From: Basidiobolus meristosporus CBS 931.73
Taxonomy: Eukaryota; Fungi; Basidiobolomycota
Direction: 5' to 3'
DNA length: 64,000 nucleotides
Assembly (NCBI GenBank): GCA_002104905.1
Contig: MCFE01000320.1
Span: 1 to 64,000, forward strand
Of this stretch, positions 30,927 to 59,985 are shown piece after piece; within the stretch, counting starts at the first letter, position 1; each line of letters starts with the position of its first letter. The notes below the pieces were generated by a model. The model was not told the origin of the DNA. It ran no database searches and saw only the letters and a list, made by a program, of their open reading frames with translations. The position numbers were made by a program, and so were the translations under genes.

Positions 30927-33900
30927 TGTTGTAAAAATTTGTATTTCCACCTAAATATTCACCTAACTTAGTCACTTAGATCATTACCTTCAAATCCTAG
31001 AAAATACTGACCAAATTCCTTGTTGGGATTTACTTAGAATATTTTCACCAAAATACCAGGTACCCCTAACATGAAAATTCTCAAAGTTGTCCAAACAGCC
31101 CCAAACTTTGCACACATGTTCTTGGACCTTCCTTAGCCTATTCTACGTGTTTGTAATGCCAAGACCAGGTAAAAGTATAAATACTACTTTTACATTCAAT
31201 AAATCATTAAGTGAAAACCACATAATCTACTTGTTCTCCCAATCACCTCCAATATCTCCAAGACTCTTACAACAGGTTATGAGCCTCAAGCTGTCACTCT
31301 CTGCAATGTCTACTACTGCTATTACTGGAATTTTTCCCTCTGCTGAAAAGTTGGATGGATCTAACTACCAAGTGTGGAAGGTGAAGATGAAGATGCTGCT
31401 ACAAGAAAGAGGCCTTTGGGATATTGTCATGGGAGAAGAATGCCCTCCTAAAAACGTGGGAGAGGAAGCCTTGAAGTACCAGAAGAAAGAACAAAGTGCC
31501 TTTAACTGCATTTGCCTTAATATCAAGGACAAATTGCTAATTCAATGCTCAAGAGCAAAAACGGCAAAGAATGCCTGGAAGGCATTCAAAGACACCTACC
31601 AGTCATGTTCAGCTGCCAAGAAAATGTATCTGAGAAGAAAATTCTTTACTACAAAGATGCTGCCAGGAGAAGAAATGAAAAATCTAATTAACAGAATTAC
31701 CCTGCTGGTAGATGAGATGGAATCTGTGGGCGTACCAACTACTGATGAGGATGTGATAGTTACCATCCTGAATAGCCTGACAGACAAGTTTCAGGGCCTT
31801 GTATCAGCCCTAGAGTCCAGAACTGAAGATTTGACCTTAAATTACGTATATGGAAGGCTCCTGGATGAGGAATTAAGAAAATCAAGCGCCAATAAGAAGG
31901 AAGAAGAAAATGCTTTAATAAGCAATGATAACCAACAAAGGAGGAACCCAAGACCCTACAAAGGCAACAGCAATCTATTTTGCAACTACTGCAAAAGGAA
32001 AGGACACACATCAGACCGGTGTTTCAAAAAGAGAGATTATCAGCAAAAGAAGCCTGAATATGGAAATGCTGCAACAACTGAAGATAGACTATTCATATCT
32101 GCACTAAATATGACCACAAACAAGGATTCTCAGACGTGGTATATTGACTCTGGAGCTTCTTAACACTTTACACACCAAAAAGAACTTTTTACCCAATATG
32201 AAGAAATTCCAATTAAGAAGGTTTTCATGGGTGACAATAGAACACTTGATGCAGTGGGAGTAGGAACTATCCAAGTAAACCTTAGAAGCAGTGAAGGAAG
32301 CCATACACTGACCTTTAAAGAAGTACTCTATGTACCAGAAATAGCCAAGAACCTACTCTCTGTAAGCAAGGCCACAGCAGAAGGACTCAGTTTCAATTTT
32401 GACAATTCTGGATGCAGGATCACTGATCAAAATGGTGCTCATATTGCTTCGGGCATCAGAGATCAGAATCTATACAAGTTGACTTATATTCCATCATATC
32501 TGGAAGCCAATATAAGTAACTTAAATGAAGAAACACCAATGCTTTGGCACAGGAGATTTGGGCACATCAATTTTGATTATTTGCGCAAAATGATCAAAGA
32601 TCAGCTAATTTCTGGAGTAAAAATTGATCCCCCAGCTAATTTGGAGCACTGTGAAGCCTGCATATATGGGAAACAAGCCAGACAACCGTTCAAGAGCTCT
32701 GGGTTAATCAAAACTAAGAAAAAATTAGATCTAATTCACTCAGATCTGTGTGGACCTATGCAAAATTTATCCTTAGGCGGGATGAAGTATTTAATCACTT
32801 TTATTGATGATTATACAAGATACACATGGGTCTACTTCATGGAGAGAAAGGAAGAAGCTCTGTCTAAGTTCAGGGAGTTTACAGCCATGGTGGAGAGAGA
32901 AACTGGTGAAAAAATCAAGAAAATACGCTCTGACAATGGTGGAGAATATACCTCAAAACTCTTCATCCACTTCTGCAAAATTCATGGGATAATGCAAGAG
33001 ACTACTGTACCATACTCCCCACAGCAAAATGGAGTGGCAGAACAAGCTAACAGATCAATAATTGATATGGCAAGATCTATGATCCATGATCAAAAATTAT
33101 CCTATGATTTTTGGGCGGAATCAGTTGCCACTGCTGTATATCTTAAAAATAGGAGTTATAACAGAATACTTTGTGATTCTACTCCATTTGCAGCATGGTA
33201 TGGGTACAGACTAAGTGCAGAACATCTAAGAATATTTGGGTGTACAGCATATGCCAAAAAACTGGCCGGAAATCAGTCAAAATTTGAGCCAAAAAGTGTA
33301 AAATGCATATTTTTGGGCTACTGCAATGAGAGTAAGGCATACAGACTCTACAATACCAAAGCAAAGAAGCTGATCAAGTCCAGGGATGTGTTGTTTAATG
33401 AAAATTCAAAATTTTCACAAAAAATGACATCAGATGATGACAAAAATTTGATCTCATGTCCACCAATTGTCAGGATTGAATCAGAGCAAAACAATGAAAA
33501 TTTTTTCACTCCAGAGGACTCTACAACCGTGGTTCAGCCAGAATCAGTGCCCAGGAATATCCCAGAAGTGATCATTCCAGTATCAAATGCCTGGAGATCA
33601 AATCGGACAAGAAATAGCCCAAATTACTATATTAATGAGGGTACAAACTTAGCCTATGCCTATTCAGTCCATATTGATGAACCTCAGACTGTAAAAGAGG
33701 CCCTAAATAGCCCTCAGACAAAGTTTTGGAGATCTGCAATGACTGAGGAATATCAGGCCCTGATGGAAAATCAAACTTGGGACTTAGTCAAATTACCAAT
33801 CAACTGAAAATCAATTGGATGCAGATGGGTCTTCAAGACAAAGTACAAGGCTGAAGGTACAATTGAAAGATACAAAGCAAGACTTGTAGCCAAAGGATAC

Positions 33901-35610
33901 TCTCAAACAAAAGGACTTGACTATACTGAGACCTTTGCACCGGTAGCCAAGTTTAATTCCATCAGATTAATATTGGCTATTGCAGCCAAATATAAGTTTT
34001 TTATTCATCAAATGGATGTAAAAACTGCATTTTTGAATGGAGAACTTGATGAGGACGTGTATATGGACCAGCCTGATGGGTTTGCTGACCAAGATAACCC
34101 CCATTTGGTCTGCAAGCTTAAAAAGTCACTATATGGTCTCAAACAATCACCAAGAGCCTGGAATTGCAAGATAGATTCTTATTTGGAATCTTTGAGTTTC
34201 AAAAGGAGTAATGCTGACTATAGTATATACTATAAGCCAGATAGAGCAAATCCAGTTCTATTAGCTCTATATGTGGATGATCTTATTATAGCCACCAATA
34301 ACCTAGAAACATTAGAAGAGACTAAATCCAGCCTATCTAAGGAGTTCAAGATGTCCAATCTAGGAGAACTCAGTTACTACTTAGGGATTAAGTTCTCCAT
34401 AGACAGAAGTACCCAGACTATTACCCTAAGCCAATCCAAGTATATTCAAGATATACTAAAGAAGTACAAAATGGAAGACTGTAAACCGGCAGCTACCCCA
34501 ATGGAGACAAACCTTAACTTGGTCAAAACTCAACCAAATCAAGAGAGCTTGGTGCCATCTGAAAGCCCTGACTTTCCTTATCAATCTATGGTTGGCAGTC
34601 TGATGTATATCATGCTTGGAACACGTCCAGATATCTCATATTCAGTGGGAGTTGTCAGCCAACATTATCAGAATTATGGATCTGATCATATTGCAGCAGT
34701 TAAGCGGATTTTTAGATACCTAAAAGGAACTGCTGATATCTGTTTAAGATACACTTATAAGGATTCAGAACAGGATCTTGTGGGATACTCTGATGCTGAT
34801 TGGGGACAAAATTTAGAAGACAGAAGATCCACCACAGGATACACCTTTCTTTACTGTCAAGGAGCAATTTCATGGAATTCAAGAAAGCAACCAACCGTAG
34901 CACTTTCTACTACAGAGGCAGAGTATATGGCAGCCTGTGAAGCTACAAAAGAAGCAATGTGGTTAAGAAAGCTCTTTACAGATTTAGGCTTATGTCAAAA
35001 AACGCCTATTACTTTATTTCAAGATAATCAAGGATGTATACAATTAGGTAGAAATCCAACTTTTCATGCTAGAACCAAGCACATAGATATTAGACATCAT
35101 TTCATACATGAAGCTATAGAGAGTAACTTAGTTAGCTTAGTTTACTGTCCTACAGATGAAATGATTGCAGACATATTTACCAAACCATTAGCTAGAGACA
35201 AGTTTGAATATCATAGGTCAAAATTAGGACTAGTCAGTATGAGCATTTAGCTAAGTGGGAGTGTTGTAAGAATTTGTATTTCCAGCTAAATATTCACCTA
35301 ACTTAGTCACTTAGATCATTACCTTCAAATCTCAGAAAATACTGACCAAATTCCTTGTCGGGATTTACTTAGAATATTTTCACCAAAATACCAGGTACCC
35401 AGAACATGAAAATTCTCAAAGTTGTCCAAACAGCCCCAAACTTTGCACACATGTTCTTGGGACCTTCCTTAACCTATTCTATGTGTTTGTAATGCCATGT
35501 CCATGTAAAAGTATAAATACTACTTTTACATTCAATAAATCATTAAGTGAAAACCACATAATCTACTTGTTCTCCCAATCACTTCCAATATCTCCAAGAC
35601 TCTTACAACA
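30927..35610 (+). mobile_element. Ty1/copia family-2 full-length element A (LTRs 30927-31274 and 35262-35610)
   Basis: TG...CA LTRs differing at roughly a dozen positions, PBS GGTTATGAGCC, PPT, TSD ACTTA/GCTTA, inserted in the LTR of copy D. Confidence 0.95.
31306..35250 (+). pseudogene. gag-pol of element A with two nonsense codons
   Basis: Single frame gag-PR-IN-RT-RH interrupted by TAA (32161-32163; CAA in element C) and TGA (33805-33807; CGA in C). Confidence 0.92.
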
Positions 35611-38222: not shown

Positions 38223-39360
38223 ACACACTGAAGGAGGCCATACACTGACCTTTAAAGAAGTACTCTATGTACCAGAAATAGCCAAGAACCTACTATCTGT
38301 AAGCAAGGCCACAGCAGAAGGACTCAGTGTCAGCTTTGACAATTCTGGATGCAAGATCACTGATCAAAATGGTGCCCATATTGCTTTGGGTATCAGAGAT
38401 CAGAATCTATACAAGTGGACTTATATTCAATCATATTTGGACGCCAATATAAGTAACTTAAATGAAGAAACACCAATGCTTTGGCACAGGAGATCTTGAC
38501 ACATCAATTTTGATTATTTGTGCAAAATGATCAAAGATCAGCTAATATCTGGAGTAAAAATGGATCCTCCAGCTAATTTGGAGCACTGTGTAGCCTGCAT
38601 ATATGGGAAACAAGCCAGACAATTGTTCAAGAGCACTGGGATAATCAAAACTAAGAAAAAATTAGATCTAATTTGCTCAGATCTGTGTGGACATCCGCAA
38701 CATTTATCCCTAGGCTGGATGAAGTTTTAATCACCTTTATTGACAATTATACTGGATATTCCTAGGTCTGCTTCCTGGAGAGATAGGAAGAAGCTCTGTC
38801 TAAGTTCAAGGAGCTTAGAGCCATGGTGGAGAGAGAAAGTGGTAAAAGAATCAAGAAAATACACTCTGAAATGGTGGAGAATAAACCTCAAACTCTTCAT
38901 CTACTTCTGCAAAATTCATGGGATAAAGCAAGAGACTACTGCACCATACTCCCCCCCCAGCCAAATGGAGTGGTAGAATGTGCAAACAGAACAATAGTGG
39001 ATGTGGCAAGTGTTGTAAAAATTCGTATTTTCCACCTAAATATTCACCTAACTTAGTCACTTAGATCATCACCTTCAAATCCTAGAGAATACTGACCAAA
39101 TTCCTTGTCGGGATTTACTTAGAATATTTTCACCAAAATACCAGGTACCCAGAACATGAAAATTCTCAAAGTTGTCCAAACAGCCCCAAACTTTGCACAC
39201 ATGTTCTTGGGACCTTCCTTAACCTATTCTACGTGTTTGTAATGCCAAGACCATGTAAAAGTATAAATACTACTTTTACATTCAATAAATCATTAAGTGA
39301 AAACCACATAATCTACTTGTTCTCCAAATCACTTCCAATATCTCCAAGACTCTTACAACA

Positions 39361-39372
39361 GGTTATGAGCCC
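39361..39372 (+). promoter_or_regulatory. Primer-binding site for half initiator tRNA-Met
   Basis: GGTTATGAGCCC abuts the LTR and is complementary to the fungal tRNAi-Met anticodon arm GGGCUCAUAACC (Ty5/copia-type priming). Confidence 0.85.
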
Positions 39373-39391
39373 CGAGCTGTCACTCTCTGCA

Positions 39392-42300
39392 ATGTCTACT
39401 ACTGCTATTACTGGAATTTTTCCCTCTGCTGAAAAGTTGGATGGATCTAACTACCAAGTGTGGAAGGTGAAGATGAAGATGCTGCTACAAGAAAGAGGCC
39501 TTTGGGATATTGTCATGGGAGAAGAATGCCCTCCTAAAAACGTGGGAGAGGAAGCCTTAAAGTACCAGAAGAAAGAACAAAGTGCCTTTAACTGCATTTG
39601 CCTTAATGTCAAGGACAAATTGCTAATTCAATGCTCAAGAGCAAAAACGGCAAAGAATGCCTGGAAGGCATTAGAAGACACCTACCAGTCATGTTCAGCT
39701 GCCAAGAAAATGTATCTGAGAAGAAAATTCTTTACTACAAAGATGCTGCCAGGAGAAGAAATGAAAAATCTAATTAACAGAATTACCCTGCTGGTAGATG
39801 AGATGGAATCTGTGGGCGTACCAACTACTGATGAGGATGTGATAGTTACCATCCTGAATAGCCTGACAGACAAGTTTCAGGGCCTTGTATCAGCCCTAGA
39901 GTCCAGAACTGAAGATTTGACCTTAAATTACGTATATGGAAGGCTCCTGGATGAAGAATTAAGAAAATCAAGCGCCAATAAGAAGGAAGAAGAAAATGCT
40001 TTAATAAGCAATGATAACCAACAAAGGAGGTACCCAAGACCCTACAAAGGCAACAGCAACCTATTTTGCAACTACTGCAAAAGGAAAGGACACACATCAG
40101 ACCGGTGTTTCAAAAAGAGAGATTATCAGCAAAAGAAGCCTGAATATGGAAATGCTGCAACAACTGAAGATAGACTATTCATATCTGCACTAAATATGAC
40201 CACAAACAAGGATTCTTAGACGTGGTATATTGACTCTGGAGCTTCTCAACACTTTACACACCAAAAAGAACTTTTTACCCAATATCAAGAAATTCCAATT
40301 AAGAAGGTTTTCATGGGTGACGATAGAACACTTGATGCAGTGGGAGAAGGAACTATCCAAGTAAACCTTAGAAGCAGTGAAGGAAGCCATACACTGACCT
40401 TTAAAGAAGTACTCTATGTACCAGAAATAGCCAAGAACCTACTCTCTGTAAGCAAGGCCCCAGCAGAAGGACTCAGTTTCAGCTTTAACAATTCTGGATG
40501 CAGGATCACTGATCAAAATGGTGCTCATATTGCTTCGGGCATCAGAGATCAGAACCTATACAAGTTGACTTATATTCCATCATATCTGGAAGCCAATATA
40601 AGTAACTTAAATGAAGAAACACCAATGCTTTGGCACAGGAGATTTGGACACATCAATTTTGATTATTTGCGCAAAATGATCAAAGATCAGCTAATTTCTG
40701 GAGTAAAAATTGATCCCCCAGCTAATTTGGAGCACTGTGAAGCCTGCATATATGGGAAACAAGCCAGACAACCGTTCAAGAGCTCTGGGTTAATCAAAAC
40801 TAAGAAAAAATTAGATCTAATTCACTCAGATCTGTGTGGACCTATGCAAAATTTATCCTTAGGCGGGATGAAGTATTTAATCACTTTTATTGATGATTAT
40901 ACAAGATACACATGGGTCTACTTCATGGAGAGAAAGGAAGAAGCTCTGTCTAAGCTCAGGGAGTTTAAAGCTATGGTGGAGAGAGAAACTGGTGAAAAAA
41001 TCAAGAAAATACGCTCTGACAATGGTGGAGAATATACCTCAAAACTCTTCATCCACTTCTGCAAAATTCATGGGATAAAGCAAGAGACTACTGTACCATA
41101 CTCCCCACAGCAAAATGGAGTAGCAGAACGAGCTAACAGATCAATAATTGATATGGCAAGATCTATGATCCATGATCAAAAATTATCCTATGATTTTTGG
41201 GCGGAATCAGTTGCCACTGCTGTATACCTTAAAAATAGGAGTTATAACAGAATACTTCGTGATTCTACTCCATTTGAAGCATGGTATGGATACAGACCAA
41301 GTGCAGAACATCTAAGAATATTTGGGTGCACAGCATATGCCAAAAAACTGGCCGGAAATCAGTCAAAATTTGAGCCAAAAAGTGTAAAATGCATATTTTT
41401 GGGCTACTGCAATGAGAGTAAGGCATACAGACTCTACAATACCAAAGCAAAGAAGCTTATCAAGTCCAGGGATGTGTTGTTTGATGAAAATTCAAAATTT
41501 TCACAAAAAATGACATCAGATGATAACGAAAATTTGATCTCAAGTCCACCAATTGTCAGGATTGAATCAGAGCAAAACAATGAAAATTTTTTCACTCCAG
41601 AGGACTCTACAACCGTGGTTCAGCCAGAATCAGTGCCCAGGAATATCCCAGAAGTGATCATTCCAGTATCAAATGCCCGGAGATCCAATCGGACAAGAAA
41701 TAGCCCAAATTACTATATCAATGAGGGTACAAACTTAGCCTATGCCTATTCAGTCCATGTTGATGAACCCCAGACTGTAAAAGAGGCCCTAAATAGCCCT
41801 CAGACAAAGTTTTGGAGATCTGCAATGACTGAGGAATATCAGGCACTGATGGAAAATCAAACTTGGGACTTGGTCAAATTACCAATCAACCGAAAATCAA
41901 TTGGATGCAGATGGGTCTTCAAGACAAAATACAAGGCTGATGGTACAATTGAAAGATACAAAGCAAGACTTGTAGCCAAAGGATACTCTCAAACAAAAGG
42001 ACTTGACTATACTGAGACCTTTGCACCGGTAGCCAAGTTTAATTCCATCAGATTAATATTGGCTATTGCAGCCAAATATAAGTTTTTTATTCATCAAATG
42101 GATGTAAAAACTGCATTTTTGAATGGAGAACTTGATGAGGACGTGTATATGGACCAGCCTGATGGGTTTGTTGACCAAGATAACCCCCATTTGGTCTGCA
42201 AGCTTAAAAAGTCACTATATGGTCTCAAACAATCACCAAGAGCCTGGAATTGCAAGATAGATTCTTATTTGGAATCTTTGAGTTTCAAAAGGAGTAATGC

Positions 42301-43336
42301 TGACTATAGTATATACTATAAGCCAGATAGAGCAAATCCAGTTCTATTAGCTCTATATGTGGATGATCTTATTATAGCCGCCAATAACCTAGAAACATTG
42401 GAAGAGACTAAATCCAGCCTATCTAAGGAGTTCAAGATGTCCGATCTAGGAGAACTTAGTTACTACTTAGGGATTAAGTTCTCCATAGACAGAAGTACCC
42501 AGACTATTACCCTAAGCCAATCCAAGTATATTCAAGATATACTAAAGAAGTACAAAATGGAAGACTGTAAACCGGCAGCTACCCCAATGGAGACAAACCT
42601 TAACTTGGTCAAAACTCAACCAAATCAAGAGAGCTTGGTGCCATCTGAAAGCCCTGACTTTCCTTATCAATCTATGGTCGGCAGTCTGATGTATATCATG
42701 CTTGGAACACGTCCAGATATCTCATATTCAGTGGGAGTTGTCAGCCAACATAATCAGAGCTATGGATCTGATCATATTGCAGCAGTTAAGCGGATTTTTA
42801 GATACCTAAAAGGAACTGCTGATATCTGCCTAAGATACACTTATAAGGACTCAGAACAAGATCTTGTGGGATACTCTGATGCAGATTGGGGACGAAATTT
42901 AGAAGACAGAAGATCCACCACAGGATACACCTTTCTTTACTGTCAAGGAGCAATTTCATGGAATTCAAGAAAGCAACCAACCGTAGCACTTTCTACTACA
43001 GAGGCAGAGTATATGGCAGCCTGTGAAGCTACAAAAGAAGCAATGTGGTTAAGAAAGCTCTTTACAGATTTAGGCTTATGTCAAAAAACGCCTATTACTT
43101 TATTTCAAGATAATCAAGGATGTATACAATTAGGTAGAAATCCAACTTTTCATGCTAGAACCAAGCACATAGATATTAGACATCATTTCATACGTGAAGC
43201 TATAGAGAACAACTTAGTTAGCTTAGTTTACTGTCCTACAGATGAAATGATTGCAGACATATTTACCAAACCATTAGTTAGAGACAAGTTTGAATATCTT
43301 AGGTCAAAATTGGGACTAGTTAGTATGAACATTTAG
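39392..43336 (+). CDS. gag-pol polyprotein of element C (one in-frame TAG at 40217-40219)
   Basis: Zn knuckle CNYCKRKGHTSDRC, protease WYIDSGAS, integrase HHCC plus SDNGGEY/QNGVAER, RT YVDD, RNase H YSDADW...IDIRHHFIRE; copia domain order. Confidence 0.93.
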
Positions 43337-51450: not shown

Positions 51451-52899
51451 TTAAAGCAGGATCTCGGTGGAATCTGAGTTGGTATCCGAGTTCGAGTCGG
51501 TGCTGGGAGTGCCGTTCAGTTGGTCGTTGAGCTGTTTGATGAACAGGGCGTTTTCAACCTCCAAAGTGCGTACCTTGCGCGCGTCGAAACCATACATTTT
51601 GATGTACTCCAGGTCAATGGCGCTGGGAACGTTCATCCCCTTCTGGTTTCGCTCCAAGGGGCCGGGTACTCCCAGGAGGGCGGCGTAATCTGGCTGGTTG
51701 ACTTGGATCACCTGATCTATGAGTTGATTGATGTCGATCTTCTCGTTGACGGAGTTGACAATGTTCTTCATGTCGACCAGGTCCCGTTTCTCGATTTCGG
51801 TGGATCGTCTGCTTCTACCTCCGTTGTACCGGTAACACAGGGAGGTGGTGCTTAGGATCTCTTCGACCCGATAGCCAAATGGTTCCAGAGTGTCGCTTAG
51901 CGCCACTGCACCCCCGTTCATGTGATTGACTCCGCTATAGTCATTGGCCACGGTGGGATTTGCGTCTTGCCAATCGGCCCAGATCTTGTCTACAAAGGCA
52001 TGGTGCATCCAGAATAGTGGGCTAGCGATGAGCAGGATAGAGAATGTGAGTCTCAGGCGGGAGAAGGGGAGGGGTAGACAAAGATGAAGGGCAACGATGG
52101 AAACCGCGACTTACTCGTTGGGACTTGACATCACTCTGAAGTCACCACCTACGCCAAAGTGGACAGTGGCATGGGGGCCAGGTTCAATATACTCTCGTAG
52201 TTCGTTATAGTTACGGGAGCGACGGATTATATTGTTGACCGACTGACGAGACCAGAAGGACGGGATGGTGCGACCGCCATCCCATCGTCGTGATAAGCAG
52301 TGGCGTCTTGGGAATCGCGCTTCCCAGCCACCAAATGGTCCCTCGGTCAAGCAGCTGTCGCCAACACCGTTTCCATTCCCTCCAAACCACCTCCATATCT
52401 CGCTGTTCTCCGGGCTTCCTGCCTCGATTGTCCAATCCTACATACAGAGCAAAGGTGAAACCTGGTCAGTCACTGCAGTGGAAAGGGGGTTGTGACATGC
52501 TTGACTGCACGGATCGCCGCATTAACCAACTGCTCAGCTAGTAGGTGGGAATGATGATTGGTGGACAACATAGATACATACCCAGTATGGCAGTGTGAGG
52601 CTGGGATTGACCGCGCGCAAGGCATTCTCGAACTGGTGAATAAAGGCCCGATGCCAGGTGAAGAATGGTGCGGTGGAGTGGGCGTGTGGGACATAGGTTA
52701 GATGAACATTCACCAAGCGATCATAAACACCGCTTTGCTTCAGAGTGTTGATCGCCTCGATGAAAGCGGTCTTTTCACCGTTGGAGAGTTGTCGGAACTC
52801 TCTTCTTACCCGGGTCCCACCGCAGCCCTGTCCAGTGACAAGAGTGAGGGAGCTGGAGGCGAGGAGAAGGGCGACGGCGAGTTTTTTGGCTAGTTGCAT
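51451..52899 (-). CDS. Secreted tyrosinase / di-copper centre protein 1 (3 exons)
   Basis: Signal-like N-terminus; CuA HLTY..HAH..FFTWHR, LPYW|DW; CuB PHATVH...SPNDPLFWMHHAFVDKIW; two GT-AG introns. Confidence 0.92.
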
Positions 52900-53378
52900 A
52901 CTGACAGACACTACAAATCAGGGGTGGGACGGAATGTGGATTCTAAGGTTCTAGCCAAAGGGCGGGTTGGGTAGGAGGAATGCACAATCAAATGTGTAAG
53001 AAAGCCTGTCACCCGCCTAGGGTATTTATAGGCTCGGCTGCAGCCGGTCACATTTGGAGCATCGATTGTTTTTCAAGTGCATTCTCCCCAAGCAATGGTC
53101 ACTTGTTTGGGATGAATGGCCATTATGTTCGTGATGGTACGGCCCTGGAGAGGGATCGATCATGCAGAGATCAGCCTATTCCCTGTACATGTGGGTGCAA
53201 TGGATCTGGTGGCCAAACAATAAAACAATTGTGTTCACTGCGTGCAACATGGCCATGGCTATTGAAACACGGGGCTGGCTCGTTCTTCGCCAGATCGTTT
53301 TACAAACATGGGCCAGTTTCAAGCTTGCATCTGGTTAGAATATGGAAGTTCAATTTTATTGGTAGGGATTGATCAAGT

Positions 53379-55698
53379 CTAGTCCCAATATTTGATGGTG
53401 CCGTCCCAACTGCAGGTCGCTACTTTGGAGGTCTCTTGCGGATGCCATTCGCAGCCGATAAGTACGCTGTCGTGCGCCTTGAATCTCCTGGAGTGATTGT
53501 TAGTGGATTCCGGTCAGCGTCCATGTGGGGCGGTGTACTTACTTGAGAACCTTGGTCGTTTTCCAATCCCAGAACCAGAGCTTTCCTTCCGCATCGCCCG
53601 ACATGATGAACCTTCAAGGTGAAGATTTAGTGTTGGTCATGCCACCCGACAAGTTTGAACTGTCACTCACCTGCCGTCAGCAGAGAAATTCGGTTGGCAC
53701 GCATAGCCGGCAATCACGTGGCCGGTGAACCTCTTCTTCCCGTTCAGTCGGAATCTATCCTTGGCGCCGTACACCACGATCTGGTTGTCCAGGGATTGGC
53801 ACGCAAGCCATTTTTCTAGAAGCAGTTCAAGGTCAGCCGATGGTTCGGGCCAAGTCCAAGTTGGGCGGCCACTTACTGTTAGGATGCAGGGAGACACTGG
53901 GCATACTGTGCATATAAGGTTCGGCGATGTACTTGATCACCACTGGAATATCGAATTCCCAAGCTCTCAGGGTTTTGTCGTCCGAGGTGGTCACGAAGCG
54001 GCGGTTTTCGTCGACAAACGTGATCGAATTGACAGCGCCCAGATGCTGGTCATACTCCTGCGTAATCTCCCCGGTGTTGATGTCGAACTGGACAACAGGC
54101 AGAAAGTTAGCGAGGTCGTTCGGGAGGGTGTCGAGGCTACGCCAAACAAACAAGTACCTGTACGATTTTCTTATCCGAGCACCCGGCCAAGAAGATGTGC
54201 TGTTTGTCCTCGTCTGGGTTGAACTTGACGCAGTATGGAATCTTCTTGGTGGTGAAGGATCTGATGCATTGGCCGGTTTCCGTGTCCCAGAGCTTAACAA
54301 ATCGGTCGTAACTGGCAGTAAGGAATCTTCTACCATCGTTGCTGAATGTAATATCGCGGACCGCCTTGCTGTGGCCGATGAATGTTCTCAGGCATTGACG
54401 CTCGTGATAGACATCCCAGATCTAGCGTACCAAAGTCCCGTCAATATATGTGGTAGTAGTGGTGATCGGTGTGCTGTGTATGGTTACCTTAACTTTGGAA
54501 TCCATGCCAGCAGAAAGCAAGAGATGTCCAGATCTTGGGAAGAACCGAATAGCAGAGACACCCTTTGTGTGTCCAGTCCAGGTATGAATATGCTTCTTGG
54601 GCAGGAAGCAGTCTTGCTCGCCAGGTTCTCCGAGCAGGTTGATGTCCAGGTCTTGTGGGATATGAATGTATGTTCTGCCTTGGTAATCATACTCAGATTT
54701 CCCTACACAAACTGTTAGCTGGCTTATCCGTTAGAATACGCTTGCTTAATGAAACTAACCGTGGAAGATGCTGGTCTCTGTTCCAGTGGTGGGCTCGTTG
54801 CTTGTATCCTCTCCGACGGGTGTGGTTTGTACAGGAATCTCCTGAAAGTAAATTGAATCAGTCTCAAGGATAAACAGCGTGGTGGTGTTTTTGTACGTAC
54901 TTCTTCATCGGGTCCAGCCAGTTCCCCAATTCTCTCGCCTTCATATCCGGCCCAAGGCCCCTTGTAAGCGTTCTCACCCTCTAATACTGAAGAGTCTCCG
55001 CGGGTCTTTCTCTTCGCCAGGTTTTTGTTCTGCTTGGCCTTTGAGTCGTATATAGTAGCACCTGACAGTAATTTGAACGTGAATACCGAGCCTGACTAAA
55101 GAGAGTGACAATGGAGGTACCTTCGAATTGGATAGCCTTCGCTGTGTCACCAACAAAGCCGCTACCGTCTAAACCACCACCCACTTGCCCTTGAGCAGAA
55201 TAAGTCAATACAGAAGGATCTCTGGCATATCCAAACGAACGGAATGTTCGCTCCTGTGTACGGAAATCATGCTCAGAAATGGCCTGCTCCTCGACATGGC
55301 CTACATAGTTGAGGGACGCTTTAATAAAAACTCAAGTGGTCTCTCGTGAAGGTCGCGAATTACCGGTCAAGATGTTTTGATTGGGAGCTCTAGTTCGAAA
55401 GGGATTGTTGGGGCCCATCACTGGTTTCACCATGTCATCGTATGGAATGTTCACAGCCACGCTTTTGTCGGTAATGCTCGTAATGATACGCTTGGAAAGG
55501 GAAGGATCCTGTTTGGGAAAGACGAGCGGGTTGGTTGTTGTGAAGGGGATTTCGCTCAACGCCGAGGGAACTTACCTCTAAGCTAACATCGGGGGCTACG
55601 TTGATTTTGATCCGTTTGTGTGATAGATTGACTGGGGCAGTTTCGTGAAATTCCGAATCCGAACCAGAAGCCGAACCGTAACCACCTAGCAGGTCCAT
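53379..55698 (-). CDS. CDC40: Pre-mRNA splicing factor Prp17/Cdc40 (WD40), multi-exon
   Basis: MDLLGGYGS..., [95 protein letters not shown]-stop. Confidence 0.93.
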
Positions 55699-56235
55699 TA
55701 TAAATTCGTGTTCGAGAGGGGAAGTATTACAAAAAGTCCACCCACCACGGAGGATCAATAAAAAGGGGATTTCGTGACAAATCCATTGGAAAATTTCCAG
55801 GATTTTTTCATCCCAAGGGAGGGTCGAGTGATTTGCCAGCGTTCACCCCAAGTGAGGATCGAGTGATTTGCAAGCCTACCGTCCATCGAGCGGATTTTGC
55901 GGGATGCGCTCAAGTGGATTTGACCACAACAGATTGTAAACGAGTCGTCTGCATCGAGTACATTGTGCTCTGCATCGGGCCACGTGTTGAGAGAGAAGGT
56001 TCGTCTCCACGTATTTCTCGCTCGGTGAGAGTGACCGCATTAATTACATGAACATTTCCCTGGCGTGGGGCCCTTGACGCACATATTTCTCTCACGTACA
56101 TGTTGAGTATTCAAACATCCCGCCATTGATCTGCACGTCAATAACACTCATGGCGCTCATATAAATGTGAATTCCTCTGCGGTTCTGGTAGATCCCAAGC
56201 CCAGTCTTTCTTGATCAATCCTCTTTCCTTTAACA

Positions 56236-57635
56236 ATGCAGATGGCCAAAAAACTCGCACTTGCACTTCTCTTCGCCTCCTGCTCCGTCACTCTTGTCAC
56301 TGGACAGGGCTGCGGTGGGACCCGGGTAAGAAGAGAGTTCCGACAGCTCTCCAACGGTGAAAAGACCGCTTTCATCGAAGCGATCAACACTCTGAAGCAA
56401 AGCGGTGTTTATGATCGCTTGGTGAATGTTCATCTAACCTATGTCCCACACGCCCACTCCACCGCACCGTTCTTTACCTGGCATCGTGTTTTTATTCACC
56501 AGTTCGAGAATGCCTTGCGCGCGGTCAATCCCAGCCTCACATTGCCATACTGGGTATGTATCTATGTTGCCCACCAATCATCATTCCCACCTACTAGCTG
56601 AGCAGCTGGTTTATGCGGCGATCCGTGCAGTCAAGCATGTCACAACCCCCTTTCCACTGCAGTGACTGACCAGGTTTCACCCTTGCTCTGTATGTAGGAT
56701 TGGACAATCGAGGCAAGAAGCCCGGAGAACAGCGAGATATGGAGATGGTTTGGAGGGAATGGAAACGGTGTTGGCGACAGCTGCTTGACCGAGGGACCAT
56801 TTGGTGGCTGGGAAGCGCGATTCCCAAGACGCCACTGCTTATCACGACGATGGGATGGTGGTCGTTCTATCTCGTCCTTCTGGTCTCGCCAATCACTCAA
56901 CAACATAATTCGTCGCTCTCGTGATTACGACGAGCTACGCGAATACATCGAACCTGGCCCCCATGCAGCTGTCCACTTTGGCGTAGGTGGTGACTTCAGG
57001 GTGATGTCAAGTCCCAACGAGTAAGTCAGGTTTCCCACCATTCGTCTCCCTTCGGCCATGAGCCTTACACTGCTATCCTGCCCAACTTTAGCCCACTATT
57101 CTGGATGCACCATGCCTTTGTCGACAAGATCTGGGCCGACTGGCAAGAGGCAAATCCCTCCTTGGCTAACGACTACAGCGGGACAAATCAAATGGATGGA
57201 AATCCCGCGACGGCCAACGATCCATTGGATCCATTTGGATACAGTGTTCAAGATATTCTGCACACCAGCGCTCTGTGCTATCGATATGCCGGCGGGCGAA
57301 ACCGGCGCTCGATCGAGCTTGAGAAGCGGGCGGTGGCCGATGAGTCCATCGACGTGCTTCTCACCACGCAGAAGATGAACTTCACGCTTAGCGAGCTGCT
57401 GGAGAAGGTGGTCGCCATGGATCGACCAAACTACAGCAGCATCTTCGGGCTACCAGGTTCCCTTGACCGGGATTCCAAGGAGATGAACGTCCCCGCAGCA
57501 TTGGACCTTGAATACATCAACATGTATGGATTCGACGTGCGTAAAGTACGTACGGTGGAGATCGAGAACGCCCTTTGGATCAAGCAGTTGAATCAGCTGG
57601 CTAGCACAGAGGCAGCACGGAGTCTTTTAGAATAG
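56236..57635 (+). CDS. Secreted tyrosinase / di-copper centre protein 2 (3 exons)
   Basis: Same CuA/CuB motifs and intron positions as the gene at 51451-52899. Confidence 0.92.
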
Positions 57636-57775: not shown

Positions 57776-59985
57776 CTACATATTCCTTGATTGCATCAAG
57801 CTAGACTGTGTGCTGGAAACATCCTTGAGCTGGGCATTCAGCGAGGAGGAGTTCTGATCGATCCACTCCAGTGAAGTCAAGTGGGCATTCAGGATCTGAA
57901 CGATCTGCGCGATCTACAAAGAAGTCACGTTAGGAGCTGCTGAAAGACTGGGTGGGTTAGGGTCATCTACTTACCGGATCCTCATCATCCTGCGCCTCCT
58001 TGGTGCCCGAGAGTACGGCGGATTGGTTGATTTCATCGATCATGGTGGCCAGGTTCTTGGACATGTCGTCGAGCTGCTTGTTCAATCCTTCGGCCAGGTT
58101 GTAGGCCTTTTCTCTTTCCTCGTCGGCCGGCTGGACTCCCTCGCCGCGAGCCAAGCCCCCGTCGAGCAACTCACGGACCTGAGATTCGTACGCGTCGAGG
58201 ATGCTCGAGAGCTCTTGCTGCTGTGAGTCGATGTATTCGAGATTCTGGTCGATGTTGGCCTGGGTGGCCTCGGCCGCCACCGTCTCGGTATAAAGCTTCG
58301 AGATCTTCTCCCCATTCTCCACCAGGACCCGGTCCCATTCCGCCACCTCCACCGCTTGCTCATGGAACTTCTTGGTATACTGGGTGAGCTCGGAGCTCCA
58401 TTTGTTCAGGATCTCGTCCATGGTCTTGTTCTTGAAAGTGGATGTGGTGGGTGTGCTGGCGGCAGCAGTCGAGGCGCTAAGTGTACTGTCAGCCGGTTTC
58501 GAGGTGAGTGTAGGATTGGTACTGGAAAGTGGGGAAATGGCCGGTTGGCTGGTGGTGGTGGTGGTGGAGAGGCTTGTGGCTGGCTTGGATCCTAAAGAGA
58601 ATCCAGTGGTTGAAGCCGCAGTGGTAGCTGGAGCACTACTTTCTGTGGACTTGGCACCAAAGGAAAATCCTGAGGCAGCAGCGGGTTGACTGCTAGTCGT
58701 AAGGCCTGTAGAAGCGGCGGGGGCAGACGCGGCGGCGGAAACGGCTGACTTGGCACCAAAGGAGAATCCTCCAGATGTGGCAGGAGCGGCGGGCTTATCT
58801 CCCAAAGTTAGTGTGCTGGTAGTGTCGGGCTTGGAAGGAGTCGACGTAGGGGTTGTGCTGCCAAAGAGTCCAGTGCTAGGTGTAGCTGAAGGGGTCGATG
58901 GGGCTGGCGTAGATGCACCAAACGAGAATCCGCCTGCAGGTTTAGCAGCGGCTGTAGAAGTGGCTGTAGAGGTAGCTGGAGTTGCTGCGGAGGCACCAAA
59001 GCTAAAGCCGCCAGAAGTTGCCGGAGTGGTGGCTGTTGGCGTGGCAGCAGGAGCTGCTGTGGAAGTACCAAAGCTAAATCCACCGGTGGTTGCTGGAGCA
59101 GCAGTTGTATTGGTGGGGGCTGGGGTCGAAGTGGTAGCACCAAAGCCAAATCCACCAGCAGTGGCGGGTGCAGCGGCCGTAGTAGCAGCTGGTGTTGTGG
59201 TAGACGAGCCAAAGCTAAAACCACCGGGGGCCGCAGGGGTAGTGGTTGTGGTAGCAGCTGGTGTGGAAGTAGAAGAGCCAAAGCCGAACCCGCCAGTGGT
59301 AGCAGGAGTAGCAGTTGTGTTGGAGGCTGCTGAGCCGAAGCTAAAGCCACTAGGTGCGGCGGGAGTAGCAGCAGCAGTAGTGGTAGCTGGGGTAGAGGCA
59401 GCGGCCGAAGAACCAAAGCTGAATCCGCCGGAGGCTGCAGGGGCAGTAGCGGTGGAGCCAAAACTAAAACCACCGGTGGCAGGCTTTACTGAAGATGTGG
59501 TAGTTGAAGCAGGTTGGGTAGTGTTGCCTGTGGTGGAGCCAAAACTAAAGCCTCCAGTGGCGGGCTTCGCGGCAGGAGTGGAACTAGCATTGTTGCTTGC
59601 GAAACCGCCAAATCCTGAGGCTGGCGTTGTGGACGAAGCGCCTGAACCGAACGAAAATCCGGAGGTGCCTGTGGTTTGAGTGTTGGCTGGAGTACTAGAG
59701 CCACCAAAGGAAAATCCTGATGATTGTGTGTTGGATCCTAAGCAACAACACGAAAGTGTTAAACCCTGAACAACGACAGCGGGTGTACGGCGACTTTGCC
59801 CGATATTTGGACCGACTTCCACTCAATCAAATAGCAAATGTCTTACCAGTGGCACTGGAACCGAAGGAGAATCCGGACGCGGGTTTACTCGTATTATTAT
59901 TACCAAAGCTGAATCCGGCTTGGAAAAGGAAGAAGGGCGTTAGAATTGAGCGTAGTATCTTCGTGATGGGGATCTACTTACACAT
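57776..59985 (-). CDS. NSP1: FG-nucleoporin Nsp1/Nup62
   Basis: Many GFSFG/GFGFG repeats with A/T/P spacers; Nsp1_C KTMDEILNKWSSEL...QAVEVAEWDRVLVENGEKI; last exon IAQIVQILNAHLTSLEWID; first exon ATG+T. Confidence 0.93.

Follow-up and report, generated by a model that had tools for sequence, protein, structure and literature searches.

Probable patchy gene conversion within an inverted tyrosinase gene pair flanking PRP17 in Basidiobolus meristosporus

The window analyzed here is a 64,000-nt stretch of the genome of Basidiobolus meristosporus CBS 931.73, in which two head-to-head tyrosinase genes of three exons each, here called A and B, flank the splicing-factor gene PRP17/CDC40. Gene A lies on the minus strand at 51451-52899 and encodes the public protein P0271 (ORX91456.1; 403 aa). 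It consists of exon 1 (52582-52899), intron 1 (52438-52581), exon 2 (52115-52437), intron 2 (52022-52114), and exon 3 with the stop codon included (51451-52021); both introns have GT..AG splice sites. Gene B lies on the plus strand at 56236-57635 and encodes P0122 (394 aa), with exon 1 at 56236-56553, intron 1 at 56554-56697, exon 2 at 56698-57020, intron 2 at 57021-57091, and exon 3, again including the stop codon, at 57092-57635. We searched the exons singly and used the public proteins P0271 and P0122 for full-length comparisons; the exon translations of A and B are exact matches in these two proteins, exon by exon.

PRP17/CDC40, a WD40 gene, occupies 53379-55698 on the minus strand (ATG at 55698, stop codon at 53379-53381) and lies entirely within the core between the two tyrosinase genes. 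An earlier note on this DNA had named the middle gene CDC40, and this assignment holds: the gene matches Prp17 chains of spliceosome structures in the PDB (E 2e-35), and Pfam detects WD40 families in it. The spacer from the start of gene A to the stop codon of PRP17 (52900-53378) contains the gene A promoter and the 3' end of PRP17, and cannot be aligned with the upstream region of gene B. PRP17 and tyrosinase B have a divergent promoter region in common (55699-56235), which sits between both gene starts; a 34-nt tandem pair is found inside it at 55807-55875. A scan of the core for bacterial-type promoters and terminators, which is irrelevant for a eukaryote, returned no more sites than were seen in shuffles. 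The neighbors of the locus are Atos and Nsp1 genes.

Both flanking genes belong to the tyrosinase family. Pfam PF00264 was detected on exons 1 and 2 of both genes, as well as on the full public proteins, with exon 1 scoring 51.3 bits in A and 52.6 bits in B (cut-off 22.6). An alignment of 22 proteins shows no variation at the copper-ligand histidines (H66, H74, H83, H195, H199, and H221), which are the same in A and B; these six ligands are common to A/B, the tyrosinases of Priestia megaterium and Streptomyces, and MelB of Aspergillus oryzae. An AlphaFold model of the tyrosinase (pLDDT 86, pTM 0.85) adopts the four-helix-bundle tyrosinase fold, and Foldseek ranked the enzymes of P. megaterium and Streptomyces highest (E about 5e-15 to 1e-13). 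Over residues 25-280, the predicted fold compares with the bacterial enzymes at a target-normalized TM of 0.77-0.81 and about 30% identity. A Y-x-Y motif closes the tyrosinase core and is followed by a disordered dibasic linker and then by an extra C-terminal domain of about 110 residues, for which no sequence match was found in the PDB. The A. oryzae pro-tyrosinase MelB has a C-terminal shielding domain, and the C-terminal domain of A and B may serve as a lid or pro-domain. Judged from sequence and model, A and B are type-3 copper tyrosinases of the short bacterial type, with this additional domain, and are predicted to be secreted. Tyrosinase domains are strongly expanded in Entomophthoromycotina, with an average of about 48 copies (bioRxiv 10.1101/2022.06.24.497490).

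A repeat search revealed an inverted repeat between A and B of 807 nt at 93% identity, with 3336 nt between the arms. The left arm (52093-52899, minus strand) starts at the ATG, takes in exons 1 and 2 with intron 1 between them, and ends 22 nt into intron 2; the right arm (56236-57042, plus strand) was placed by the repeat search together with pairwise alignment. Past the arms, weaker inverted similarity (73% and 70%) extends through exon 3. By pairwise alignment, A and B are 94.3% identical in exon 1, 92.0% in exon 2, and 63% in exon 3. Intron 1 is 97.2% identical, with 4 mismatches in 144 nt and zero gaps; intron 2 has 22 gap columns and 66% identity in the remainder. The promoters are unalignable, i.e., the upstream regions are about 40-50% identical, which is the level of random alignment. 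No further copies of the repeat were found across the window.

Within the arms, the divergence between A and B is a mosaic. The main putative conversion tract (52277-52847 on the minus strand and 56288-56858 on the plus strand) spans 571 nt with 14 mismatches (97.5% identity) and no indels, and includes the whole of intron 1. It gives way in exon 2 to a less-converted island (52167-52276, minus, and 56859-56968, plus) with 23 mismatches in 110 nt (79% identity), and then to a second near-identical piece (52108-52166, minus, and 56969-57027, plus) with 1 mismatch in 59 nt, which includes the last part of exon 2 as well as the intron 2 donor site. The repeat search and the mismatch list thus reproduce the breakpoints of the inverted near-copies that the earlier note had placed at 52108-52847 and 56288-57027, along with its four mismatches in intron 1 and its divergent patch at about 56860-56970. 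Its description of the surrounding sequence as clearly diverged is correct for the promoters, most of intron 2, and exon 3; the signal-peptide region is intermediate (80% nucleotide identity, dS about 0.27).

Divergence at silent sites (dS, NG86) changes across the same boundaries. Inside the tract, dS is 0.135 for codons 26-106 of exon 1 and 0.06 for codons 1-54 of exon 2, and intron 1 is 2.8% different; in the 110-nt island dS rises to about 1.0. Outside this sharply bounded segment, intron 2 is rich in indels and dS in exon 3 is about 1.9, reaching 3.3 past the first 30 codons, i.e., it is saturated. The best two-breakpoint partition separates 8.2% from 41.5% mismatches (chi-square 225), and A and B share a perfect run of up to 113 nt, whereas permuting the mismatch positions 10,000 times never gave one longer than 68. 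We also looked for a signature of GC-biased conversion: GC3 in the converted exons was not higher, a result that is neutral and not contrary to conversion.

These values bear on whether conversion is needed at all. The duplication could be recent, with very rapid change in exon 3, intron 2, and the promoters, or the front could have been preserved by nothing but purifying selection, and the catalytic half does hold the conserved copper sites, so constraint at the protein level is genuine. However, selection on a protein cannot keep an intron at 97% identity or silent sites at a dS of 0.06-0.13, nor can rapid change in the protein explain why silent sites in exon 3 are saturated (dS >1.9) or why intron 2 has lost its similarity. 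Furthermore, the C-terminal divergence between A and B is at least as great as that between species. We consider an origin without conversion to be very improbable.

Repeats are the usual site of assembly errors, and it is conceivable that polishing one arm with reads that belong to the other made the two look alike. The CBS 931.73 assembly was, however, generated with PacBio (PMC7466969), and a typical PacBio read is longer than the entire 5.5-kb structure. The two arms are on a single contig, where their flanks are unique, and the JGI gene models are intact for both copies. The differences that remain in the tracts are 15 substitutions (13 transitions and 2 transversions) with no indels, and cross-polishing would leave no sharply bounded 110-nt island. 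We therefore give an artefact of assembly or polishing hardly any weight.

Comparison with relatives calibrated these observations at the protein level. A and B share 98% identity in the front part and 52% in the back part, whereas an orthologous pair, P0272 of B. ranarum and P0273, a third paralog of B. meristosporus, is 72-79% identical in front and 63% behind. The front of A and B is thus too alike for the divergence of the back, which argues for patchy interlocus gene conversion. In the island, the A-B protein identity (84.6%) is not above that between B and B. ranarum P0272 (87.2%). Taken with the low silent and intron divergence inside sharp bounds and the saturation outside, the comparisons with B. 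ranarum and the third paralog bear out the earlier proposal of an old duplication overlaid by recent, patchy conversion.

In a tree of the C-terminal part, A pairs with B. ranarum P0121 (support 74/89), and forcing A and B into one clade costs 7.9 lnL units, although the constrained tree is not rejected (AU p 0.074). Phylogenetic discordance is no more than suggestive here. P0121 is the positional ortholog in B. ranarum; its gene adjoins the Atos ortholog on an 8,332-bp contig, with neighboring locus tags (K7432_011956 and 011957). When gene B exon 3 was used in a word search for its own B. ranarum ortholog, P0121 alone was found. The front half of the positional ortholog is absent from its gene model, so the duplication may date from about the time of the species split and not from before it. 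In a metagenome scan with a piece of PRP17, none of 80 fungal loci was a close relative (identity at most 62% over most of the query), and a tyrosinase neighbor was seen at none of them, which shows that the arrangement is not general, and nothing more.

We suggest, with a probability of roughly 85%, that A and B are old paralogs whose front ~0.75 kb has undergone patchy interlocus gene conversion. Non-reciprocal homologous recombination between the inverted copies would have repeatedly overwritten ~0.75 kb of one copy with the other, a stretch made up of intron 1, the portion of exon 1 for the mature N-terminus, and the greater part of exon 2, so that the catalytic half would undergo concerted evolution. 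Recombination would no longer reach the promoters, the bulk of intron 2, or the part of exon 3 for the C-terminal domain, whose identity has dropped below what it requires, and these would evolve independently. The internal 110-nt island and the graded identity at the edges point to two or more layers of events, or else to a heteroduplex whose mismatches were repaired patchily. The mosaic of divergence, the gene models, and the enzyme family are established directly; we infer recombination as the mechanism behind the likeness of A and B, and no function for their head-to-head arrangement.

Concerted evolution of inverted duplicates is well known from Drosophila Hsp70Aa/Ab and from Y-chromosome palindromes, where whole genes or arms are usually affected. 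As in those systems, conversion between A and B would be intrachromosomal and act over a few kilobases, with sharp tract edges and homogenized non-coding sequence. In contrast to them, the catalytic front half alone is converted here, and the C-terminal domain and the regulatory DNA stay distinct.

A crossover in the repeat would invert the ~3.4-kb core, with PRP17/CDC40 and both promoters, and such an inversion would give each promoter and signal peptide the C-terminal exon of the other gene. The geometry allows for it: the arms are in inverted orientation, both tyrosinase genes are read outward, and inverting the core would break no gene. Conversion between inverted repeats occasionally ends as a crossover during homologous recombination, and inversion of the core would arise in this way as a rare by-product of conversion and not as a regulated switch. 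The orientation of PRP17 might accordingly differ among isolates or species with no regulatory role, a state that would be harmless at this locus and is compatible with gene conversion as the explanation of the mosaic. The closest precedent is the flip/flop region of Saccharomyces chromosome XIV, with the inverted pairs YNL018C/YNL034W and YNL019C/YNL033W (Salzberg et al. 2022, PMC9731477). There too, inverted paralogous coding genes surround unrelated genes, conversion is recurrent, inversion is safe for the genes, and the homogenized paralogs have allowed recurrent re-inversion over evolutionary time. The Saccharomyces repeat, however, is ~4 kb long and almost identical, and both orientations occur in many strains, whereas A and B have a 0.8-kb arm at 93%, homogenization of part of each gene, a one-gene block (3.3 kb), and one known orientation. 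Crossovers between such short, diverged arms should be rare, and the orientation comes from one assembly. A passive inversion polymorphism is rather unlikely.

The earlier note went further and raised the possibility of a promoter-swapping flip cassette, a potential two-state switch. As a functional cassette, the 3.4-kb core would be turned over by homologous recombination in the arms, at a biologically useful rate and perhaps on induction, and this would exchange the promoter and signal peptide that drive each C-terminal isoform. The geometry stands, as the core holds both promoters and the entire PRP17 and its inversion would do no harm, and conversion would itself show that the arms recombine. 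Repeat-mediated inversion also serves as a switch in fungi, in the flip/flop mating-type switching of Ogataea polymorpha, Komagataella phaffii, Pachysolen tannophilus, and Ascoidea rubescens (PMC5720833, PMC6692504), and, as there, recombination between A and B would alter which genes adjoin which flanks. A working two-state switch lacks support, on several counts. First, the repeat is short and 2.5-7% diverged: known cases have long, near-identical repeats of about 2-4 kb (~2 kb or more in flip/flop systems), but the A/B arm is 807 nt at 93%, its best tract is 97.5% identical, and its longest perfect block is 113 nt. Even at the far better 4-kb, almost identical repeat on S. cerevisiae chromosome XIV, about 53,800 mitoses and 950 meioses passed without a flip (PMC9731477). 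Second, no recombinase or nuclease gene was found in the core, which encodes PRP17 only, or in the window, whose large ORFs are copia-type gag, integrase, and reverse transcriptase genes at least 13 kb away. Hin, the FimB/E invertons, and 2-micron FLP/FRT likewise have inverted repeats flanking promoter-bearing DNA, but they combine short specific sites with a nearby dedicated recombinase gene. Third, mating-type flip/flop is induced by nitrogen starvation and depends on position-dependent silencing near a centromere or telomere, whereas the region examined showed no centromere, telomere, or other landmark of silencing through which orientation could have an effect. Lastly, the mature enzymes would be nearly unchanged, the swap being limited to the pairing of promoter and C-terminal domain, and the single orientation known is that of one assembly.

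A functional flip cassette is thus extremely unlikely, and scarcely more credible is the narrower idea that the core with PRP17 and both promoters inverts through the converted tract in some nuclei or isolates. If it did, the inversion would yield promoter-swapped secreted pro-tyrosinases that differ in the C-terminal, probable lid, domain, and would represent a recombination-based flip outside mating-type loci and outside budding yeasts. Nothing shows that the core between A and B is a working genetic switch.

The A/B locus is a clean, ordinary case of gene conversion, and the finding alone alters no concept. Its value lies in how well it is bounded: under the conversion reading, this is domain-specific concerted evolution, in which the catalytic half is kept alike as the regulatory DNA and the C-terminal domain diverge. 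Since the whole-protein identity of 77% between A and B masks an old split, conversion among copies matters for trees and for the dating of duplications in the tyrosinase family.

Gene A (51451-52899, minus strand; public protein P0271, 403 aa) and gene B (56236-57635, plus strand; P0122, 394 aa) encode tyrosinases. Gene A comprises exon 1 (52582-52899), intron 1 (52438-52581), exon 2 (52115-52437), intron 2 (52022-52114), and exon 3 (51451-52021); the corresponding parts of gene B are 56236-56553, 56554-56697, 56698-57020, 57021-57091, and 57092-57635, and all four introns run from GT to AG. Between the two genes lies PRP17/CDC40 (minus strand, ATG at 55698, stop codon 53379-53381), whose top PDB matches are Prp17 chains in spliceosome structures (E 2e-35). 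The 537-bp divergent promoter region common to PRP17 and tyrosinase B contains a tandem pair of 34-nt units (55807-55875; 88% alike, start-to-start spacing 35 nt) that could be a duplicated regulatory site. The outer left neighbor is an Atos/DUF4210 gene matching the Atos-like protein P0001 of the same strain. The outer right neighbor is an Nsp1-type FG-nucleoporin gene (57963-59822, minus strand). Its coding sequence carries degenerate repeats of 69-72 nt (GGFSFG units), and its Nsp1_C domain is conserved. Further away, a copia-type LTR retroelement occurs twice in the window: in the copy at 39233-43336 the integrase and reverse transcriptase ORF (1007 aa) is unbroken, and in the copy at 31087-35250 this region is broken into separate ORFs.

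A repeat search of the window returned inverted arms at 52093-52899 and 56236-57042 (807 nt, 93% identical, 3336 nt apart). By pairwise alignment, genes A and B are 94.3% identical in exon 1, 97.2% in intron 1 (4 of 144 positions mismatched, as the earlier note had counted by eye, and zero gaps), and 92.0% in exon 2, versus 66% in intron 2, with 22 gap columns, and 63% in exon 3. The upstream regions align at the level of random sequence. Within the arms the pattern is a mosaic: the signal-peptide region (the first 52 nt) is 80% identical, followed by a tract with 14 mismatches in 571 nt (52277-52847/56288-56858), an island with 23 in 110 nt (52167-52276/56859-56968), and a last piece with 1 in 59 nt (52108-52166/56969-57027). 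These segments reproduce the near-copies previously placed at 52108-52847 and 56288-57027, including the divergent patch at ~56860-56970. Perfect identity extends over at most 113 nt in a row; when the mismatch positions were permuted 10,000 times, no run was longer than 68.

Silent divergence, estimated segment by segment by the Nei-Gojobori method, follows the same mosaic. dS is 0.135 in exon 1 (codons 26-106), 0.06 in exon 2 (codons 1-54), about 1.0 in the island, 0.5 over the first 30 codons of exon 3, 1.9 over the whole of exon 3, and 3.3, i.e., saturated, past those 30 codons. The likeness of the front part is more than protein-level selection can maintain, because it extends to an intron and to silent sites (97-98% identity). 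Nor does fast protein evolution account for the divergent rear, as it can produce neither saturated silent sites in exon 3 nor an erased intron 2. With both explanations failing, the pair must be old and its front part overwritten much later. We consider it probable (about 0.85), judging from sequence, that the front part reflects gene conversion between old paralogs. The old duplication with recent, patchy conversion proposed in the earlier note is supported by the mosaic of dS, by intron 1 versus intron 2, and by the protein comparisons below. Graded edges, together with the island, show either more than one conversion event or a heteroduplex that was repaired patchily. The sequencing of this strain used PacBio (PMC7466969). 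All differences inside the tracts are substitutions (13 transitions, 2 transversions) and none is an indel, which looks like real mutation and unlike long-read errors or cross-polishing.

Relatives were compared as proteins, using a profile search with exon 3 of gene A and a word search with P0122; searches took each exon separately, and full-length comparisons relied on the public proteins. A third B. meristosporus paralog, P0273, lies on another contig (71,870 bp) and is 64% identical to B. In B. ranarum, we found P0272 (K7432_013817; partial, N-terminus absent; 6,036-bp contig) and P0121 (K7432_011956; a model of exon 3 only; 8,332-bp contig); a word search with exon 3 of gene B found no separate B-type ortholog in this species. 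The truncated models and short contigs could stem from breaks in the assembly where sequence recurs among the tyrosinase copies of that species too. Since P0121 shares its contig with the adjoining Atos ortholog of B. ranarum (K7432_011957), it is gene A's positional ortholog. The C-terminal tree groups P0272 with P0273 (support 93/94) and A with P0121 (74/89); constraining A and B together is 7.9 lnL units worse, an arrangement that is not rejected (AU p 0.074). P0272 is the ortholog of P0273, and the pair is a useful unconverted yardstick for the subfamily, being 72-79% identical in the front half and 63% in the C-terminal part, whereas A and B are 98% and 52% identical, respectively. This calibration indicates that the A/B split dates back to about the B. 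meristosporus/B. ranarum divergence or earlier and that the front halves were homogenized long afterward. Protein identity in the island is no higher between A and B (84.6%) than between B and P0272 (87.2%), so the island serves as an internal control. A metagenome scan with a piece of PRP17 returned distant PRP17 loci only, none beside a tyrosinase.

The inverted repeat had been proposed as a potential two-state switch. Its geometry is as described: were the arms to cross over, the core would be inverted together with both promoters, the genes and PRP17 would stay intact, and promoters and leaders would be re-paired with the other C-terminal exons. We found nothing beyond this geometry in favor of a switch, which is thus unsupported. 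PRP17 is the only coding content of the core, and no recombinase gene was found in the window, where the large ORFs are those of the copia-type retroelements, at least 13 kb away. In the flip/flop systems known from fungi, the repeats are near-identical and about 2 kb long or longer, and switching relies on recombination being induced and on silencing that is position-dependent (PMC5720833, PMC6692504). The closest analog is a region of Saccharomyces chromosome XIV, in which flanking inverted paralogs are held alike by conversion; its 4-kb, almost identical repeats gave 0 orientation changes in ~53,800 mitoses and 950 meioses (PMC9731477). The tyrosinase arm, in contrast, is 0.8 kb long and 93% identical and nowhere matches perfectly over more than 113 nt, so flips should be much rarer still. 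A working two-state switch is very improbable; it is plausible, if unlikely, that a rare inversion has become fixed in an isolate or species.

Both proteins begin with a hydrophobic leader, a putative signal peptide, and retain all six copper-ligand histidines. The predicted core fold (pLDDT 86) superposes on the Priestia megaterium and Streptomyces tyrosinases (TM 0.77-0.81), and a C-Y-R-Y motif closes the core in both. A linker with conserved dibasic sites, predicted to be disordered at residues 283-295, then leads to a C-terminal domain of ~110 residues that is confidently folded and has zero PDB sequence matches; linker and domain span residues about 280-385 (51451-51650 and 57092-57635). 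If fungal pro-tyrosinases are a guide, the domain is probably a pro-domain or lid that a Kex2-type protease cuts off. On this reading of the locus, conversion keeps the catalytic domain uniform, and the two genes differ in their regulatory DNA and in their probable lid domain.
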